From Klebsormidium nitens (taxonomy: Eukaryota > Plantae > Klebsormidiophyceae), in NCBI GenBank assembly GCA_000708835.1, contig DF237029.1:169527-233526 (forward strand): a stretch of DNA of 64,000 nucleotides, in the 5' to 3' direction. Positions within the stretch are counted from its first letter, which is position 1. Each line of letters starts with the position of its first letter. Made by a program: the position numbers and the translations under genes. This document shows positions 16,385 through 32,900 of the stretch, in pieces. The notes beneath the pieces are model-generated. The model was not told where the DNA came from and did no database searches. It saw nothing but the letters and a program-made list of their open reading frames with translations.

Positions 16385-19300
16385 ATGGGCCCCTCCAAGC
16401 CTTCCATCCTTTCTGCCGCACTGCTGTCGCGGGCAACTATTGTTGTCTTCACAGTCTGCTTCCACTCGTTTGCCGACAACTATGACACCTCCTCTGAGCT
16501 TGATGCGGACTGTTTGCACACACATTCCAATCTAAGACAGAAGTTGTGGCTCAAAAGTGGAACCTCACCAGTGACTGGCCCCCTAGACAGATACATCACA
16601 TGGGACGCCGTGCACTTTGTGCGCATTGCAAAGTGTGGCTATGAGTTTGAGCAGAGCTTTGCATTCTTCCCTGCCCTCCCGCTAGTGATGCGCACACTTT
16701 CGACAACCTTTCTGTGGCCCCTTAGCGGCCTCTTGGGGGAGCGGGGGACGCTCTGGCTCTCCGGGTTGCTGCTGTCAAATTGTGCCTTTGTTGCATCAGC
16801 GGTCTTCCTACACAGGTAGGTAGGTACGAATGCCAGACTGACTGTTGCGTGGTTCAAAGGGAAAATTAGTGTCTGGCATACCTCCAAACAGGCCCTGATC
16901 TCATAAGCCATACCACCAAATTATCGCCTCTGCTATGGTTAGCTCGAAGAGTGATACTGAGAAAGCAAGACTCTGATGTGCAGATTGGGGTTGGCCACCC
17001 TGCGCGATGAAGAGCTGGCGTATCGAGCGGCGCTCCTCTACTGCTGGAATCCAGCCTCAATCTTCTACTCCTCCGTGTATCCTCCTTTGTCACAAACTTT
17101 GTTGACGGGTCTCCTGTGTTACCACCCTAGATCGTGTAAGCTGTCGACGTCCATCTTCTTGGATCTTTGCTGCTAGGTTGAGGACTTAGAAAAGTAGATT
17201 GCCCCGCCAACCAACTGTCAATGATTGCCTCCTTTCGGTCCTACCGGCACTAGTCAAGCTTCAATCGACATCTTTGACTGCACTTGAGCAGTTACACCGA
17301 GAGCCTCTTTGCTCTGGCGTCCTTTGCGGGGATGCTCTACCTGGTGCAGCGCAGGAGGGCCTTGTCCCTGCTTCTCCTGGCTGCCTCAACGTCCGTCCGG
17401 TCCAACGGCATCTTGCACGCGTACTTCTTCGTTTTTGAAGCTGCGGCGACAGCTTCCGAGCACTGGAAGGAAGCACTAGAGGTACGATGTAGCCCTCTTT
17501 GCTGCAACATCCATGTGTCTCTTGGAGAATCTTCTTCGTTTTTCAGGACTGTGTTAGATCCTTACCTTGAAGTTGAGCCGTCTTCAGACTTTCTCCCTCG
17601 TCTCAAGTATAGGTAAGAAGCACTCTGCCCGTAAGTAGACGACGAGCAATCTCGTCCACAACGCGTCCTTTGTCATGAGCACGGGTCCATAACAGCTTCC
17701 TGTGACGTCACAATCCTGTCCGCAGGCCCTGTCACGGAAGAAGGAGCCCGAAGCTCCCGCTTACACTCGCACAAGCTCTGCACTCGTCTACGCCCTCTTT
17801 GCGGTGCTCAGGGGCGTGGTCTGGAGCGCGCTAGTCTGCACACCGTTTGCCCTCTTCCAAGCATACGGGTACCAGCAGGTTTGCGTGAAGGGCGACCAAC
17901 GCCAGCCGTGGTGCAGTAACACCATACCGTACATCTATGGCTACGTCCAAGACCGGTACTGGTAAGTGCCGCCAAGATCATAGCATCGCTGATGGACCCG
18001 TCAGAGTCGAGTGGTGTCGCCGGGCTGTTACGGTGATCGTGAGAATTTTGTAAAAGACGTCAGGAAAATGATTAAGGGAAGTTGAAAGGTCTCTGGTACA
18101 TGTTCATCTTTTCCATCTCCACGAACGACTTCAAGTTCGATTCCGTTTCCTCCGACCGGAAAGAAGACTAGTGACTGTTGAAGGTTTTGACGGGCCCAGA
18201 TCATAAGATTCGCGGAGCTCAACAGTTGACTTGCAACACGCAACGAAGAAAGATAACGCTGCTTCTGATTGCTTCTGATTGCATCTGATTGCGTCTCCTT
18301 GCGACACATTGAGTAGGTGCGGGCCTTCGGTCGCTCTCAAATAGAACCAGTTGCATCTTAGATCCATTTTGCTGACGTACTCCTTAGCTCCATCTTGAAC
18401 AACTTCGCTCAGAGTACCAACTTTAGATTCTTGTTGTTTCTCTCTACGTCCGCCCCAATCTGCCTCGACGTCTCTCCAGGAACGTGGGCTTCCTCCGCTA
18501 CTTCCGCCTCCAGCAGCTGCCCAACTTCCTGCTCGCCTCGCCCATGATCGCCCTCTCCGTGGCTGCCGTTGTATCATACGCCCTCCACGACCCAGCCCGC
18601 TTCTTCCTCCTCCACCTGTGGCCCACCTATACAAGAGAACCACCAGGCAAAGCCATTGCAAGCAGCGAAGACAAAGCGGGGGCGCCGGGAGACCCTGGCA
18701 CGAAGCGGGACAGAAGTACGTCAAAAATGTCCGGTTCGCAGTTGCTGACGAAGCGGAACGGGGGAGGGGTAGAGAGCTCGCAGCCTTTTGCGGAGGCGCT
18801 TTCTGCGCTGGGGGACTGGCAGCGGCCAGTGGGGCCTGAGGCGGGCTTCTTCTCGCCGGACGTGCTGTGCTTCACGCACCAGCTGGCAATCATGGTCTGC
18901 GTTGCCACGCTCATCATGCACGTACAGGTGGGACGACCCGTTGGATGACGTCGTTGTCCTGCTTTCCTTGCGCTTTGGGATTGGATTTTGTTTGAAGAGG
19001 GAAAGGCATCCGGGCGGCATAAGATGTGCTGGAGAATTGCGTGGAAAGATCGGGTGCGATATGACTTGCTGTGGTTCGGAGGCCTCCTTAGTACTTCATT
19101 GCTCTTTAGAGAGTGGAGCTTGCGGTTCTTTGAAGTAACCCAAGACTGGAAAAGCCAATCAGAAGATGACGTGTGTGGTTTATAGTTTCAGGCCCCGACT
19201 GGTGATAGTACGACCTCCATCAGAAGAGATCTTGATGTTTTTTCTGTTGGATCACAGTCTCCAGTCAGTTCAGTCTCCGAGTTCTGACGTCTGATGGATT

Positions 19301-19603
19301 CCACATCTTTACTTTGTGTTCGACAAAGTCTCATTGGATTCTTAAGTGCGCCTTGTTCACACGTATTGTGCGACTGCGCAGGTTGCGACACGCTTTCTGT
19401 CGGCCAGCCCCGTGGTATACTGGTACGCCGCTGGTTTGTGTAGGGATCGGAAGCAGGCACGAAACCATAGCAAAGAGATAAGTAGAGGCCGAAAAGGCCT
19501 TCCGAAGGAGTTTGGCAGCATTTACCGATGGATCTGGGGTACGTTCATCGGCTACAGTGTGATTGGAACGCTGCTCTTTACGAACTTCTATCCATTCACT
19601 TAG
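16385..19603 (+). CDS. PIGV: GPI mannosyltransferase 2 (PIG-V/Gpi18), ~539 aa
   Basis: Exons 16385-16815, 16984-17076, 17292-17481, 17726-17961, 18480-18927, 19382-19603 join in frame (1620 nt). Motifs [94 protein letters not shown]. Confidence 0.93.
17077..17291 (+). other. Putative U12-type (minor spliceosome) GT-AG intron in PIG-V
   Basis: 5' end GTATCCT; TCTTTGAC at 17271-17278 about 14 nt before the AG; no polypyrimidine tract between branch point and AG. Confidence 0.65.
18263..18291. repeat. Intronic 10-bp tandem repeat (three copies)
   Basis: ttctgattgc ttctgattgc atctgattgc. Confidence 0.7.
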
Positions 19604-20528
19604 CTGAAGCGGTTTGCAGGAAAAAGCGGGGCTGCGTGACACCAGAATAACGTACAACCTCCGGAGGCGTTTGATTGCCTGGAAACATGTTTATAACTCA
19701 ACACTCCCGTAGTACGCTCCTGAGCAAGCATGATGATGTGCCGCGCGAATTTCGCCGGCGGTCGCACTCAGTGCGCTCTTATATCCGTCAGTTACCGTCA
19801 GGCTTAGAGCCTACGTGTGCGCGCTAACCACACGCGGGAAGTGCAATATATTGTTAATAGCAGCGAATTTCGCATCCATCTCAAAACATGGGCATTATGA
19901 AGGCGACTTTAACTGACGGTATAGAGGCTCGACGGGGTGTAGCTTACTCGTCAGGTCGTCATGCAGCATCTCGTGCAAAAGCTTAAGGCAGGCTTAAGGG
20001 CCTTTGTTTTTGGTGGCTTTGCACGCAGCACCGTGAAATGCACGTAGCCAAGACCGTCAGACGGTTTGCGATTGACCACCCAAAAGCGTCTCGGGGTTCA
20101 TGGTCTGGTATGCATTGTTCTGCGAGCACTCGTGCTTACGCTCCTCAGTCCAGCCACAAAAGGTCTTTTAGCTGAACTGCCGCATTTATTATTATGAGAG
20201 TAAACGAGCGGCCCTCGATCTGCCTTCGGACTAGCGGCCGGTTTGACATAGCCACCCCCGTAATATGTATGCATGGAAGCAGCTACAGTCAAGTCATCGA
20301 TTACAGACGATTACGCGATTGCTCAACAAACATAAAAGCTCATTTCCGTCGGATACACGAAGAATGGAAGCTTTGAGAAAGGAGTCGGGGCATTCTTCAG
20401 CGCGCCGGTGAGATACACGAAGTGCTCGACGGCGCGCAAGCTGGTCAAGAATCTGAATTGGAAGCCTCAAGTGCAAATTCTGTCCGCGGGTCGACATGAT
20501 TTTTTGAGATGGACGGTGCTGACTTGTA

Positions 20529-22326
20529 TCATTCTTTCGCCTTGGGCTTCCCGATTGATTTCAGGATTGCCTCCGTGGAGATCGCCAGCCCCGGGAAAAG
20601 GTCGGGCCGAGGAGCGAGCGTTTCTGCGCCGCGGAGACTCTTCGGACTTTCCTTGCGCCCCTCAATCCACGTCCTTCGGTCATAGGTGTAGAACTCTTCA
20701 CCATAGGGATCGACGATCAGAACGAAAGCCGCGCCGGCCCTCAGCCAATCGTCCGCCTTGTCAAAGACAGACTGCTTCATCTGCAGAGATGCGGGTATGC
20801 AAAGCTCTCAGGCAGTACTGAATCACAGATGCCAAGACAAACAAGCGGCGTCCACCTTGTAAAATGTGTGAGTCTGCGTACGTAGAGCTTGACGATGATG
20901 CGCGAACTGGTGGAACAAGAAAGAAACCAGGAGTCCTGCCCACCCCAACTTATTACTGAGAAGAGTTGGCGGTGCGGCTGATGCAAGCGTGCCACACTCC
21001 AAAATACTGTTTAAATCTACTAAAGATGGCCTCAGGTGACAAAAAGAAAGTTTGACTACGTTCTGCGCATTAGGGCCTGATGCACAGTAAGTAAAAGATC
21101 ACAAGCCTCGCTGGGTTGGGCTGACTTCGATTGATCTGCGAAATTGCGGTTGATGCTCTCATTTCTGTGGCTCGCGCCAGAAGGCGATCACGAGGTGAGG
21201 ACAGTTATCTCGTGGAGCATCAACCAACGACAAGGCAAAAGCTCTCGAGAAGGTGTGTGCTGAAAGCTTTGCATAATCAACGGTGCGTCCAAGTATCCGC
21301 CATCAGCCTGCACTGCTGGCAGCCGCTTGATGACGATCGCCATAGACCAGAAAGCGTGCTGATTTTGAGCTGACTTTAAGCTATTATAAAAGATTCAGCG
21401 GTGTCCACCTGGAAAGCCGATCAGAATCTAAACTTAAAAGTACAAAACTAGTCTTTGAACAAACCGCACATGTGAACAAACGACATATCTGAACAAACCA
21501 CCTGGGTGAATGAGCACCCAGGAATCCTTCGAGACGGACCCCGATGCCTAGCGGCCTTAACTTGACAGCTGGCTGCTGGACACTTCTATTAACCTTCAAC
21601 ACGGCAACCCGGACCGATGAACAAGCAGAGCTTGCAACAGCAACAATGCCAGTAGCATGAAGATTTCTCTTGAACTTACCGAGCTCGCGTCAGTGCTGTC
21701 AGTGCTCGGTGGAAGCATCTCGACCAGCAGAGCATTCGGGCAGCCATTAAGCTGAGGCTCCTCCCTGTTCACCACTTCTCCGAAAGAAGAGCGAGACATC
21801 AGCCATGCGGCTGGCACCAGCAAAGCCTTCTGCTCCTTTAAGTAGATGTCAGATAAGTCCTCCAGAACCTTGACCCTTTCGTACACTTCAATACTGAAGG
21901 CAGTGTCGCCCCCACCCACAAAGAAAACCTTTCTATCGGACTTTCTGATATCACTTGCCCAATTTCCGAGCTGGCGGACAATCTCACCGCCAAGAGCGCA
22001 TCCTATAATGCAATCGTCACTCTGTTGCCCCGAGTTTCTAATTTGCAGCCAGGAAAATGCTCAGAGAGCACCTCGAGCTGGTATGCTGAGACGGGCTCTG
22101 CAAACTCAAGCGCCTTAATGCCATACTTTCGCAAGAGCGTGGAAGTGTTCAGCTTATTATCCTGAGTCTGGGCGACGTTCGCCTCCTCAGCGTGAGAATC
22201 AGGAAGTGCCCTCCTCTTCTGGCCCCCAGCAAAAAATTTGCACGGGCTTCTCCGCCCAATCAGGCCTTGCTTCTTGTTACGTAGGGCTTTGCATGAGACA
22301 GCGGCAAGGGAAGCAACGGCAGCCAT
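20529..22326 (-). CDS. Uma2/DUF820 family PD-(D/E)XK-fold protein with a transit-peptide-like leader and an apparent frameshift near 22005 (possible pseudogene)
   Basis: Exon 1 22326-21680, intron GTAAGT..CTGCAG, exon 2 20780-20529. Ordered Uma2-like blocks: QLEVLSEHFPGCKLETRGNRVTI / GGEIVRQLGNW / VFFVGGGDTAFSI / VPAAWL / CPNALLVEMLPPSTD / DKADDWLRAGAAFVLIVDP / DLFPGLAI. The first block is in a different frame from the rest, with TAG at 22003-22005. Confidence 0.75.
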
Positions 22327-22935
22327 TTTTTTTTCTGAGGTGCCACCGTGGCGCCGTCTGCGTTCCTAGCACAGACTCGACAGAGCGCTGAACAAGCCTC
22401 AGCCTCGCGGGGCTTTCTGTATGTTGCACGATATCAAATGACGTTACAGCCTGCATACCGGAGTCTATGCATTGCATTATTGAAAGCTGGCTTCCGAGTC
22501 TTTCTGTGCATCTTTAGGTCGGGTATATCAATTTTCTTGATTAGGTGTTTGTTCAACTTCGGTGAAGCACCAAAACCGGCCGGGCCAGGACTTGCAAGGC
22601 GTACCCCATAAGGTGATCCCCTTCGCGCCGAACCCCGTTAACGGCTCCAAACCCTCCTCAACCCACACGTTGGACGCAAACGTTTGGACGCGAGCGTGCA
22701 AGAAGCACATCGGGCGGACCGGACTCAGCCTGCGTCAGTTAGGGCCATTGTGCCATTCAGTTATCTCTATACCGTAGCTACCTCGATCGTACTGCATGCG
22801 CCAATTTAAGACATGCATCTTCAAAGACATAGCTATTGTAATTCTCTGCGGTCAAGTAGTACCTTAGTCGACTCTTCAAGAATGTGTTCCCCTCTCCGCT
22901 AATTTTCTTCAAGACTATATCTTCAGTATACGAAA

Positions 22936-22995
22936 GTTCGATGGTTTCTCCGCTGCAAATCTGTACAACGGTTCGATAGTTCCTCCGCTGCAAAT
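22936..22995. repeat. 35-bp-period direct repeat in intergenic DNA
   Basis: gttcgat(g/a)gtt(t/c)ctccgctgcaaat at 22936 and 22971; a partial copy tccgctgcaaa near 23202. Confidence 0.6.
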
Positions 22996-23516
22996 TCGTG
23001 ATTCTGACATTCTCACTTTTCTGAAATTTTCCTTAGAGCGTGCTACAATACGACGGTTACTGGCATGCACATGCGCATTAATTTGAATTGGAGAGATCTG
23101 AGAACCATCTCGCATTTTAAGCACGGTCTATTTGTCTTCAGATACGTAAGTACCCATACTCGTCTAAACATCAATTATGCAGGAGCTTTTTTTTTACCTC
23201 GTCCGCTGCAAAATGATCGAACTATCTTATCACATCTGCCCACAACCTCTTTGTGACCCTGTACAAACTTTCCTAATTTTTACATGCTTTTGCCGAACTG
23301 ACACTGGTATGTTCCTCCGATGTCGCTTTCCTATCACATAACCGTCTTCTAGTAACTACTTCAAGACTCTACAAACACACCTTCCGCTGAAGCATTATCC
23401 ACAACCTTTGAACGTTTCTCAGCGTAACCCTTCTATTCGACCTCCCCCTCCTATCCTTATACGCTTTCCGCGAAGCTTCCGAACCATCTTAGCATTCCGT
23501 AACCTTTTTCTGCACA

Positions 23517-26500: not shown

Positions 26501-28135
26501 GGGTGCACAGACTAGGCTCAAAGCATTGAGAGAGAGTTTTCATTCCAAAAGCAGCAGACAGTGCGCGTTGAACGAACGTCACAATCGCCGTTGAGATGTA
26601 TTGCCGTATCAATCGACTGTCAGTATCTCGACGCCAAGGCCAAGTGTTCTGCTCTAGCAGCTATATCTAAGATCATTTAGTCCTGAATTAACCCTCAGAA
26701 CCGTTAAATATCCTCCAGCCTTCTGGATCATCCAGACATTGAACACAAAGCACCCCAAGAAAACATGTTTCCAAGCACATCTTATTCTGAAAGCAGATAT
26801 TCGAAGTCAAATACGTCAAGCTCTGAGGGTCGACATTCTTAACGCCCACGGAAATCTGACGTCAAGACCTGAAGGTCCGCATACTCAACGCCCACGGTAT
26901 TCTGACGTCAGGACCTAAAAGTCTACATATCTGAGGCCTACGGAAATCTGACGTCAAGAACTGAAAGTCGACACACTTAACGCCCCCGGAAATCTGACGT
27001 CAAGACCTAAAAATCTACATACCTGAGCCCCACGGTATTCTGACGTCAAGCCCTGAGAGTCGAAACACTTAACGCCCCCGGAAATCTGACGTCAAGACCT
27101 AAAAGTCTACATACCTAACGCCCGCGGTAATCTAACGTTAAGACCTAAAAGTCAATATACCTGAGGCCCACGGAAGTCAGGGATGCCCGTGCTGGTACTG
27201 ATGCCTGCGCCAGTGTATGCCACCATGTACTGACTCTGCGAAACATGGATTTCGTTGTATTGATTGCTGAGGATTAACAGGTCAGTGTTCACCACCTTCA
27301 GGAAAAGCTCAGTGGCTCGAAAAATAATCTTCCAGGCCTTTTGCGCCCTACCTCGAAGGTCACATGAAGGAGGCAAGGCGCTTCGAGCAGAGCCCAAGCT
27401 GTGGCTGTGATAGCTTTCACAGTTGAACGTTTAGAGATGCGCAAGCTGGTGGAAAAATAAAAGAAAACATCCTGTTGCAATTTAAGTGGGGTTCAGCTGG
27501 CTTCTTACAGAGTAAAAGATGTACAACAAACAACAAACTTGCTACTCCGTAAGAAGAATCACGGGAAGGCAGAATCACGGAGCCCTCAGACTTTCGATTA
27601 CGACTTCAGAGCTGCACGTCTTTATGTACTCTCTCTTGCCCAAGCAACCACAAAGGTTGCAGACATGCAAATTAATTGACAGCTTTGTAGTCCACCCTGA
27701 AAGGCCTCGAAGTCCAGCTTGTCAAAGAAAGAAAGGCAGCCTTGTAATGGAGCAAAGCTCGAAGACAGCTGTCTTCAAATTTGTGTGCCTTTAGCATACT
27801 CCATCTCTGCTCATTGCATCCAGCAACCATGCCTGGGGGCTTGTATGCAGCCATGCTCCTTTCCAAGCTTTCATGCACTTTAGAAGCGGCTTCTCACAGT
27901 TCACTGAGCAATCGGAAAGTTAGGAACACGGGGCCAAAATTTGAGCAGAAGCCAATACATTCCCAGCCTGTATACCATACCTGGCAGTGTAGTGGCAGGA
28001 TAGTATGCAGCGCTTGGAATCAATAAGCTGCCGTACCTGTTTGATCAGATTTGCCAGCTGTTTGATCTTCTTCTGAAGCACGTCCGGCGGGTCCCGGTAC
28101 TCCGTCGTCTCTTCGGGCACGCCCAGGTCCGCCAT
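23517..28135 (-). CDS. SRT1: Class IV (SIRT6/7/SRT1-like) NAD-dependent deacetylase, ~275 aa
   Basis: Exons 28135-28037, 27235-27161, 26266-26109, 25374-25234, 24619-24451, 23702-23517 join in frame (828 nt). Motifs [49 protein letters not shown] zinc site, [33 protein letters not shown]. Confidence 0.92.
26803..27180 (-). repeat. 46-bp tandem array (~8 units) built from the sirtuin exon-2 3' end plus splice donor
   Basis: tctgacgtcaag recurs at 26855, 26901, 26947, 26993, 27039, 27085, with variant tctaacgttaag at 27131. The final unit is the real exon end (PDFRGPQ|gtatat). Confidence 0.92.
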
Positions 28136-29942: not shown

Positions 29943-32900
29943 CTAAGGAACCGGAAGCTCACCCTTCGCAACAAACGAACCGAAAGCTTCCAGGGACTTC
30001 TTCCGCCTGGGACGGCCCGCACTTGCCATTGCCTGTCCCTTTCCTGAGTCCCCCACTTCGTGCTCTGCCCTAGCTCTTTCATGGGCTCCTATCTTTGACT
30101 CCAGCAATTGTCGCAAACATTCCTCCGCACACACCACCCCCGTACCCGACAGCTCTTCAGTCGCTTTCTCCAACGCTTCAACGGTGATCCTATCCGATTT
30201 GGCCAGCTTCTGGATTCCTTGCCCCAGGGGAATGTCGCCGATCGGCTGCCCAGTGCTCGAGACGCGTCGCCCCATGCTTTCTGGCAGCTTTGGAGAAGCG
30301 TCCTCCGTTCCTTCCAGACCCCCATCTCCCAAAGCCTCGCTTCCAAACTGACTCCCGTCTGCATCCCCGTTTCCCACCCCACTATTCAGCGCATCCGCTC
30401 CCTGCTCGTGTTCGCGTAATCCCCGACTGCTCGGTCGTCCCCGGAAGCTTTCTACCAGTTGCCCCACTTCATCGAGCTCCGCAGCCTCCCTCTCCCGCTC
30501 TCTCTCCTCGTCTGCCACGTGTCCGTTTGGAAGGTCAGCCACGTGGCTTGGGCCGGCAGTCGTTGCGGACCCATGTGCTTCTCGACTCAGGGCTTCATCC
30601 CCCTGCAGAGCGCATTCTTCGGCTGTCTCCCTCTCGATCTTCACGACCTCTCTCCCCTTCTCAGACGTCGCATGGCCGCTCTCGGCTGGGGCACTCCCCT
30701 CGGACAACCTCGACCAGCCGTTCCCACGCTCTCCGACCCCATTGCTTCCTTGCGCACGCAACCTCTCGGAGGCGGACCTCAGAAACCCCTTGCTTCGAAG
30801 CTTGCGCCCGGGCAGGCTGCCACTGTCCAGCTCAGCAGGCGCCGTCCGGTGCAACCGGTCCACCATCCGTACGACACGTGGCCTGCCGTCCTCTTTTCCC
30901 CCCCCTGGCCGGAGCCCCTTGTGCCCCCCTCCTAAACCTCCGCTCGAATGGCCAAATCCGTTTGCGGCTCTTGACATCACCGCCCCGTCCGAAAGGCCGT
31001 TCAGCCGGGGGGCCTGCCCCGCCCCCAACGAAATGTGCCGCGTCAACCCGTTCTCCCCTTCTTTCCGCCCCGACGCCTCCTCCCGATCCTCGAAGCGCGA
31101 ATTTTCTTCCCCAGCGGTCTCCCCCGCCTCCACCGTGTGCGGCAGCACAAACCGGACGTCGTGCGAGCTTCGGTGGCCCCACCGGCCCAGGTTCCGGTAG
31201 CTCTGNNNNNNNNNNNNNNNNNNNNNNNNNNNNNNNNNNNNNNNNNNNNNNNNNNNNNNNNNNNNNNNNNNNNNNNNNNNNNNNNNNNNNNNNNNNNNNN
31301 NNNNNNNNNNNNNNNNNNNNNNNNNNNNNNNNNNNNNNNNNNNNNNNNNNNNNNNNNNNNNNNNNNNNNNNNNNNNNNNNNNNNNNNNNNNNNNNNNNNN
31401 NNNNNNNNNNNNNNNNNNNNNNNNNNNNNNNNNNNNNNNNNNNNNNNNNNNNNNNNNNNNNNNNNNNNNNNNNNNNNNNNNNNNNNNNNNNNNNNNNNNN
31501 NNNNNNNNNNNNNNNNNNNNNNNNNNNNNNNNNNNNNNNNNNNNNNNNNNNNNNNNNNNNNNNNNNNNNNNNNNNNNNNNNNNNNNNNNNNNNNNNNNNN
31601 NNNNNNNNNNNNNNNNNNNNNNNNNNNNNNNNNNNNNNNNNNNNNNNNNNNNNNNNNNNNNNNNNNNNNNNNNNNNNNNNNNNNNNNNNNNNNNNNNNNN
31701 NNNNNNNNNNNNNNNNNNNNNNNNNNNNNNNNNNNNNNNNNNNNNNNNNNNNNNNNNNNNNNNNNNNNNNNNNNNNNNNNNNNNNNNNNNNNNNNNNNNN
31801 NNNNNNNNNNNNNNNNNNNNNNNNNNNNNNNNNNNNNNNNNNNNNNNNNNNNNNNNNNNNNNNNNNNNNNNNNNNNNNNNNNNNNNNNNNNTCTTTGCTC
31901 ACGTTCGGCAGCTCGTGGCCGACAGACACCCCCGACAGGCTTTCCACCCGCCCCAGCCCCGGTTCGTGCACCAAGTGCCGCCCCGAGCCCTGCTCAGCGA
32001 TCGGGTGCCACCCGATCTGCAGCGGGGGCCCGTCGCGCCTCCGGGGCCCCCGGATCGACCCCATTTCGTCCGCCAGCAGCTTCTCCGGCGTCGTCGCGGG
32101 CGCTGCAGACTCGTCCCCGTGGTCGGGCAACACCTGGTGCGAGCTGCTGCGGAAGAGCGGGCCCCCGGCTTTGGTCCACGAGATCTGCGTCATCTCGTTC
32201 TCCGCCTCGCTGTCGCTGCTATGCCCTTCCCCCGGCTTGCGCTTCGGCCGCCGGAGGGCGCCCCACGCGGACAGCCCCGCGCGCGTCATCTCCGCGATGT
32301 CGTCCTCGGTCAGCGACTCGGAGGAGAAGTCCCGGGGGAGCGTGTTCCAGGACGGGATGCGCCCGCGGCCGAGGCCGAGGCCGGTTCCGCGGAGGCCGCT
32401 GCCGTCCGTGGACGCCTCAGCCTGGCGCCAAAACTGGGCTTCTTCGCGCGCGCGCTTTCTGCAGACGGAGCCGAAAGGCAGGATTGAGCAACGGACGCGA
32501 AATGTGCGTGCTTGCTTCTCGGATGCCGGTTGTTGCCGGGTTTAGCGAAGTCTGCGTTTCCTCGGTCGTGCTTGTCGGGGATGGACAAACAAGCAAGCGA
32601 ATCTTGGAAGAATCTCCCTACGAAGACCTTTTCAGAGAGCTTCGGTTGAGCTCTAAAAACACCCTCTATTTTTCGAGCGACCGAGACAATCAAGCGCCAT
32701 ATAGTACAAGAACTTCGAAGGTCGCTGAATCGCACCTGGCCTCGTGCTTTCTCCAGGCCAGGTCGGCGACCACCTTGTCCAGCTCTAGCTCGATGGCGCT
32801 GTTGGCAGTGATCGCGGAAAGCTTGGCCCACGTGGCACGCACGCCCTGGGACATGCCACGCTTCAGCTCCGTGGAGGTGGGGTTGCGGATGAGGCCGATG

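Follow-up and report, generated by a model that had tools for sequence, protein, structure and literature searches.

A minus-strand gene of Klebsormidium nitens, interrupted by one intron, raises the question of whether a nuclease fold known from bacteria has been taken up by an alga and sent to one of its organelles. The stretch of DNA analysed, hereafter the window, is 64,000 nucleotides long. A sequence-only reading had presented the locus as an intact, domesticated Uma2/DUF820 gene with a leader resembling a transit peptide, and as the best candidate in the window for an undescribed system. Uma2 proteins are abundant in cyanobacteria and have, to our knowledge, no known function.

We find that, in Klebsormidium nitens NIES-2285, the locus is with a probability of about three in four a unitary pseudogene that is still transcribed and whose RNA is spliced correctly. 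The family to which it belongs survives. It is small, fast-evolving and tandemly duplicating; Klebsormidium-type algae have it, as does at least one eukaryote sampled in a metagenome.

Layout of the locus and its transcripts

The gene lies in an ordinary nuclear setting. Its neighbours are a patatin gene, a SIR2 gene, a PIG-V mannosyltransferase gene, CHMP7 and an F-box gene, and no repeats bounding it were found. A tie to the neighbouring SIR2 gene was considered and rejected, as SIR2 is a separate multi-exon gene. The PIG-V gene (GPI mannosyltransferase; window 16385-19650, plus strand) points towards the Uma2-like gene, 3' end facing 3' end, and is well expressed: its RNA contigs measure about 2 kb and have a word depth of 55-66, against 2-6 for the Uma2-like transcript. 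Elsewhere in the window, a 46-bp minisatellite of about 7.5 copies occupies 26813-27175, with higher-order periods of 92 and 138 bp and TGACGTCA palindromes. The composition profile falls to zero GC at about 31170-31900, between flanks of 65-73% GC with a strong negative GC skew. This stretch is most likely an assembly gap, that is, a run of N.

The features of the locus are listed in Table 1. All the Uma2 peptide blocks quoted by the sequence-only reading lie on the minus strand where it had placed them, and its implied single reading frame is contradicted by the way in which they are distributed. The first frame encodes a leader of about 70 aa (MAAVASLAAVS...), followed by the start of the Uma2-like domain (ALEFAEPVSAYQLEVLSEHFPGCKLETRGNRVTIAL) with the KLE..G..VTI block. 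Its product begins with MAAVASLAAVSCKALRNKKQG... and ends with ...KLETRGNRVTIAL at the TAG. The blocks EIVRQLGNW, GGGDTAF (quoted as GDTAF), PAAW and LLVEMLPPS are found in a second frame, offset by 2 from the first. This second frame is open from 22060 to 21599, has its first ATG not before residue 88, and overlaps the first frame by 57 nt (22060-22006). Followed across the splice, the downstream frame is open for 210 codons. Exon 2 contributes FDKADDW, FVLIVDP and DLFPGL.

Table 1. Features of the Uma2-like locus of K. nitens, in window coordinates.
Feature	Position	Strand	Details and evidence
First open frame	22006..22326	(-)	107 codons, ATG at 22326
In-frame stop TAG	22005-22003	(-)	same in X6 record 11 (RNA) and X3 record 6 (DNA)
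10-nt deletion junction (GAGATT/GTCCGCCAG)	21977..21985	(-)	DNA alignment against all four tandem copies
Exon 1, second frame	21680..22060	(-)	127 codons, no usable ATG
Codon at the Asp site	21811-21809	(-)	Ala where Uma2 'PD' has Asp (PAAW instead of PDAW)
Conserved Glu codon	21721-21719	(-)	
Intron	20781..21679	(-)	899 nt, GT..AG, phase 0; sequence and spliced contig X5 record 9
Exon 2, C-terminal third of domain	20529..20780	(-)	83 codons and stop
Conserved Lys codon	20759-20757	(-)	in exon 2

Over 19300-23300 we aligned contigs of the same organism, drawn from a single DNA run and from three runs that are probably RNA. This read evidence comes from a single strain, and for RNA from few low-depth contigs, not raw reads, which show presence and not quantity. 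RNA contig X5 record 9 joins 21680 exactly to 20780. Being spliced, it confirms the spliceosomal intron described earlier, with its donor TCG/GTAAGT at 21680/21679 and its acceptor CTGCAG/ATG at 20781/20780, and it identifies the material as RNA. No RNA depth was seen within the intron among the contigs of this region.

Relatives of the gene and kinship with Uma2

When exon 2 was run with HMMER against all 1.84 billion representatives, only five relatives came up, with identities of 38-70%, all of them short exon-like ORFs. Three are on one 32-kb Logan contig of a related alga, from SRR23617307 (SRR23617307_237592; loci L094-L096), and two on contigs of JGI metagenome 3300060284 (loci L097 and L098). 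The Logan contig is syntenic with the K. nitens window, with PIG-V and CHMP7 next in the same order and exons at 72-88% nucleotide identity. On it, four copies of the gene (c1 to c4) are arranged in tandem, and they share both the leader and the phase-0 intron. Their N-termini all read M(A/V)A(I/L)AS(L/I)AA(V/I)S, and their introns have GTAAGT or GTGAGT as donor and CAG or TAG as acceptor. The position of the intron is kept in all relatives. The blocks of the K. nitens gene are beyond chance, since the downstream frame stays open across the splice and the blocks are common to six relatives.

Copies c1, c2 and c4 are intact, with an uninterrupted exon 1. The copy closest to K. nitens is c3 (L095:5820-7080), at 70% nucleotide identity against 65-67% for the others, and a common leader is found in both. 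It is broken independently, by a 25-nt deletion about 30 nt farther downstream, and has PTVW at the Asp site. The L097 gene is intact and has its own Ser/Thr-rich leader, MASVFASKLSPSTFGQ... The more distant L098 (L098:6556-7936) has a frame change between 'SERYPG' and 'VVRSGRTIIV' and perhaps an extra intron; it may represent a third decayed copy, or else a misassembly.

Beyond this family, word-based protein searches with the middle piece and exon 2 gave no match except the annotation of the locus itself. The tblastn searches of the same two pieces against plasmids gave chance matches only, and exon-2 alignment scans of JGI metagenome contigs and GTDB genomes gave no match. One metagenome match to the exon-1 alignment, a 25-residue fragment with stops, was discarded. 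The donor cannot be named, because the exon-2 search of the 1.84 billion representatives contained no bacterial protein at E 0.001 and scans of bacterial genomes and metagenome contigs held no closer bacterial kin. A bacterial donor thus appears untraceable, and the cyanobacterial or endosymbiotic origin suggested earlier cannot be shown from these sequences.

The likeness to Uma2 might in principle be chance or convergence, in a lineage-specific eukaryotic protein of other origin. Such a reading agrees with the lack of bacterial proteins just described and with the direct profile searches, which, like the fold and large-scale searches, ran on separate exon pieces, the joined protein being analysed in scripts only. 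Exon 2 scored 11.5 bits (E 0.21) against Pfam Uma2 (PF05685), under the gathering score of 27 bits. No Pfam Uma2 match was found in the other K. nitens pieces or in the exon-1 products of the intact relatives. The NCBIfam scan likewise gave no Uma2 match, and PDB sequence searches were empty. For the middle piece, the language model placed proteasome beta subunits nearest (0.91), which also suits a chance likeness; this assignment was rejected for its low shared-feature count and lack of Pfam support. The neighbours of exon 2 argue the other way, as Uma2 clusters make up 51 of the 60, at 0.94.

Profile comparison weighs further against chance. As Uma2 seeds we used 65 distinct ORFs of 170-215 aa, taken from viral contigs via a degenerate motif; all 8 that were scanned against Pfam proved to be Uma2 (E 1e-30 to 1e-36). 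A Nostoc plasmid was considered as another seed source and had none annotated. With the HMM built on these seeds, the spliced K. nitens sequence reached 7.8 bits, whereas none of 1000 shuffles exceeded 3.5 bits. In hhalign, the six-member family matched the 65-seed alignment over 149 columns, with a probability of 86.3% and E 4.8e-6. The reversed control fails, at 0.2%, and K. nitens alone reaches only 20.6%. The PD, E and K positions are in register: P(D/A/T)AW falls on the Uma2 'PD', LLVE on 'EIVSPS' and DK(A/V)DDW on the conserved Lys.

Structure models lead to the same group of proteins. The exon-1 domain of L097 was modelled with AlphaFold from a family-only alignment that held no Uma2 sequences, at a pLDDT of 69.9, and shows a helix, a hairpin, a long helix and then a sheet. 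The AlphaFold and Foldseek comparison that had been proposed for this locus favours Uma2, with 1wdj_A (TT1808) as the best PDB match of the L097 model (E 8e-4) and further matches to 6okh, 9y1l and 3ot2. An exhaustive VIA-align comparison placed three solved Uma2/DUF820 structures first among 48,161 chains, namely 1wdj (Z 7.3), 9y1l (Z 6.8) and 3ot2, a DUF820 protein (Z 5.3), with a drop to Z 3.9 at the fourth chain. The exon-2 model (pLDDT 57.7) was too poor for structure search. A Uma2/DUF820-type restriction-endonuclease-like fold is therefore supported for the family by a predicted model of the exon-1 part in L097, and chance or convergence is quite unlikely. We regard the family as truly related to Uma2, though at a great distance. 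The identity proposed by the sequence-only reading stands as remote kinship, through hhalign and the structure matches, and does not stand as a Pfam-level assignment.

The break in exon 1

The DNA alignment of exon 1 reveals the nature of the damage. At the codon aligned to the K. nitens TAG, the closest copy, c3, has TGG, and c1, c2 and c4 have CGG, TGC or TAT. About 25 nt beyond the TAG there is a 10-nt gap that is filled in all four copies and shifts the frame by -1; its place, also relative to the TAG, varies by a few bases with the alignment chosen. Homology in frame 1 persists beyond the TAG, with VTIAL*DAL in K. nitens aligned to VTIAYCDAL in L097. As judged from these alignments, the TAG and the 10-nt deletion are two separate lesions.

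The break is no assembly error, since RNA and DNA contigs reproduce it exactly. Neither RNA contig X6 record 11 (21880-22113) nor DNA contig X3 record 6 (21953-22516) differs from the window where it spans the stop and the frame change. A mini-intron of 18 nt or 38 nt spanning the break was excluded, as unspliced RNA contigs cross it. The mature mRNA accordingly has no uninterrupted frame from ATG to stop. The lesions are recent, to judge from the downstream frame still being open for 210 codons, and they could be strain-specific, all reads being from one strain.

The public model of the locus, P0001, joins 22326-22072 directly to exon 2, hiding the damaged segment. Its name, 'Sirtuin family protein', was probably carried over from the true SIR2 gene just upstream. 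A gene that works through this 168-aa isoform, with 22072 spliced to 20780 and the damaged middle skipped, is highly unlikely. The model is present in GCA_000708835.1 (contig DF237029.1), a GT follows 22072 and the junction is in frame. However, the RNA contigs do not use it: X6 record 11 and X7 record 14 (22031-22266) pass 22071 unspliced, and X5 record 9 uses the donor at 21680. The product would also be without about 130 domain residues, including the Asp-equivalent and the Glu, and so without the fold; no Pfam match is recorded for it, and its name does not fit its sequence.

Even less probable is a functional gene in which a programmed -1 frameshift within 22060-22006 yields the full-length leader and Uma2-like protein. 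The frames do overlap there by 57 nt, the shift needed is indeed -1, the long downstream frame is open and the message is made and spliced. Yet no X XXY YYZ slippery heptamer exists in the overlap, and its sole U UUU site is upstream of the homologous KLE..VTI strand, so that a shift there loses the strand. Shuffled sequences fold as well as the RNA of this region (z = -0.09). The homology of frame 1 beyond the TAG also speaks against a shift, and intact relatives need none; in the orthologue c3, the damage lies at another site and is due to another deletion. That the c3 and K. nitens copies are broken differently points to relaxed constraint on this member, not to a programmed event.

Finally, bacterial contamination or a recent bacterial insertion, which the essentially bacterial nature of Uma2 (PMC3424549) would make thinkable, is already refuted by the spliceosomal intron removed in RNA and by the synteny and intron position conserved in a second alga, and it also conflicts with the eukaryotic flanking genes (SIR2, PIG-V, CHMP7) and with a GC content in line with that of neighbouring sequence.

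This leaves the pseudogene as the preferred reading. The K. nitens gene bears a TGG to TAG nonsense change and a frameshifting 10-nt deletion, and its catalytic Asp is replaced by Ala. It is most likely non-functional, and the earlier claim of an intact domesticated gene, with its rank as the best candidate for an undescribed system, has to be given up. Its mRNA would yield at most a 107-aa N-terminal fragment, made of the leader, the first helix and the hairpin, which would be unable to form the nuclease fold. Rescue by frameshifting or by an alternative isoform keeps a small residual probability. In no respect that matters does the locus differ from known transcribed unitary pseudogenes, which show the same combination of a spliced transcript, a nonsense codon with an indel, and an orthologue independently disrupted in a relative.

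Leader, active site and place of the family

The ancestral gene would have encoded a protein of about 300 aa, with an N-terminal leader of organelle-targeting type and a very divergent Uma2/DUF820 domain. This domain would have had the PD-(D/E)XK restriction-endonuclease-like fold, with one phase-0 intron in its gene, and presumably came from bacteria.

The first 42 residues of the K. nitens leader contain 10 Arg+Lys and 0 Asp+Glu, and the first acidic residue is D43, as the sequence-only reading had described. Leaders are present in every family member with a readable N-terminus (c1-c4, L097 and L098). This composition, together with the family-wide presence, would fit a transit peptide or presequence. 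The proposed transit-peptide-like leader is in this sense retained as a property of the family, although the K. nitens gene that carries it is itself broken. For the domain, pairwise dN/dS is 0.26-0.65, indicating weak purifying selection; for the leader it is about 0.5-1.1, indicating that the sequence after the first dozen residues changes almost neutrally. Targeting peptides usually show this pattern.

As for the active site, Glu and Lys are invariant across the family. The Asp is kept in c1, c4 and L097, and is replaced by Ala in K. nitens, c2 and L098 and by Thr in c3. K. nitens thus lacks the full set of Asp, Glu and Lys through its Ala alone. Loss of the Asp by itself does not mean decay, since c2 is without it and yet intact. 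The c1 and L097 proteins, which keep all three residues, may be organelle-directed, metal-dependent nucleases or nucleic-acid binders.

Known systems differ from the algal family in several respects. Uma2 is described as bacterial, as a 'predicted endonuclease' and as of unknown function (PMC3424549). Uma2/DUF820/TT1808 proteins (PF05685; 1WDJ, 3OT2, 9Y1L, 6OKH) share with the algal family the order of helix, hairpin, long helix and sheet as well as the register of the PD...E...K positions, and their structures are the best matches of the family model. The algal genes, unlike these, are nuclear genes of eukaryotes, with a single spliceosomal intron and an N-terminal leader of 70-90 aa. The family stays under the Pfam threshold, the Uma2 'MsPps..H' segment is not conserved in it, and several of its members are without the Asp. 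A Uma2 domain has been reported in a fungal proteome, in F2SXP0 of Trichophyton rubrum (PMC4102429). In contrast to the algal genes, this is a single protein that Pfam recognises directly, and for which no leader, intron conservation or family has been reported. DUF506 (PF04720) is a PD-(D/E)XK family of plants and green algae, also of unknown function (PMC3424549). It shares the nuclease fold and the green lineage, but is a different family and had no match in the Pfam scans.

A eukaryotic family with an intron, a leader, a Uma2-like domain and tandem duplicates appears to be undescribed and of narrow distribution. No literature linking Uma2 with Klebsormidium or with chloroplasts was found. 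Tentatively, and with more doubt than confidence, the intact c1, c2, c4 and L097 genes may be seen as a captured bacterial Uma2 fold that has gained an intron and an organelle leader, acts on plastid or mitochondrial nucleic acids, and undergoes tandem birth and death in the manner of defence genes. K. nitens would then hold a dead member that reveals the family.

The reach of the result is limited by the narrow distribution and by the decay of the K. nitens copy. It corrects the public annotation of the K. nitens locus and removes this locus from the candidate working systems. For the family as a whole, a eukaryotic branch that may be directed to an organelle and that occurs naturally with and without the Asp would be a convenient system for probing the role of the Uma2 fold.
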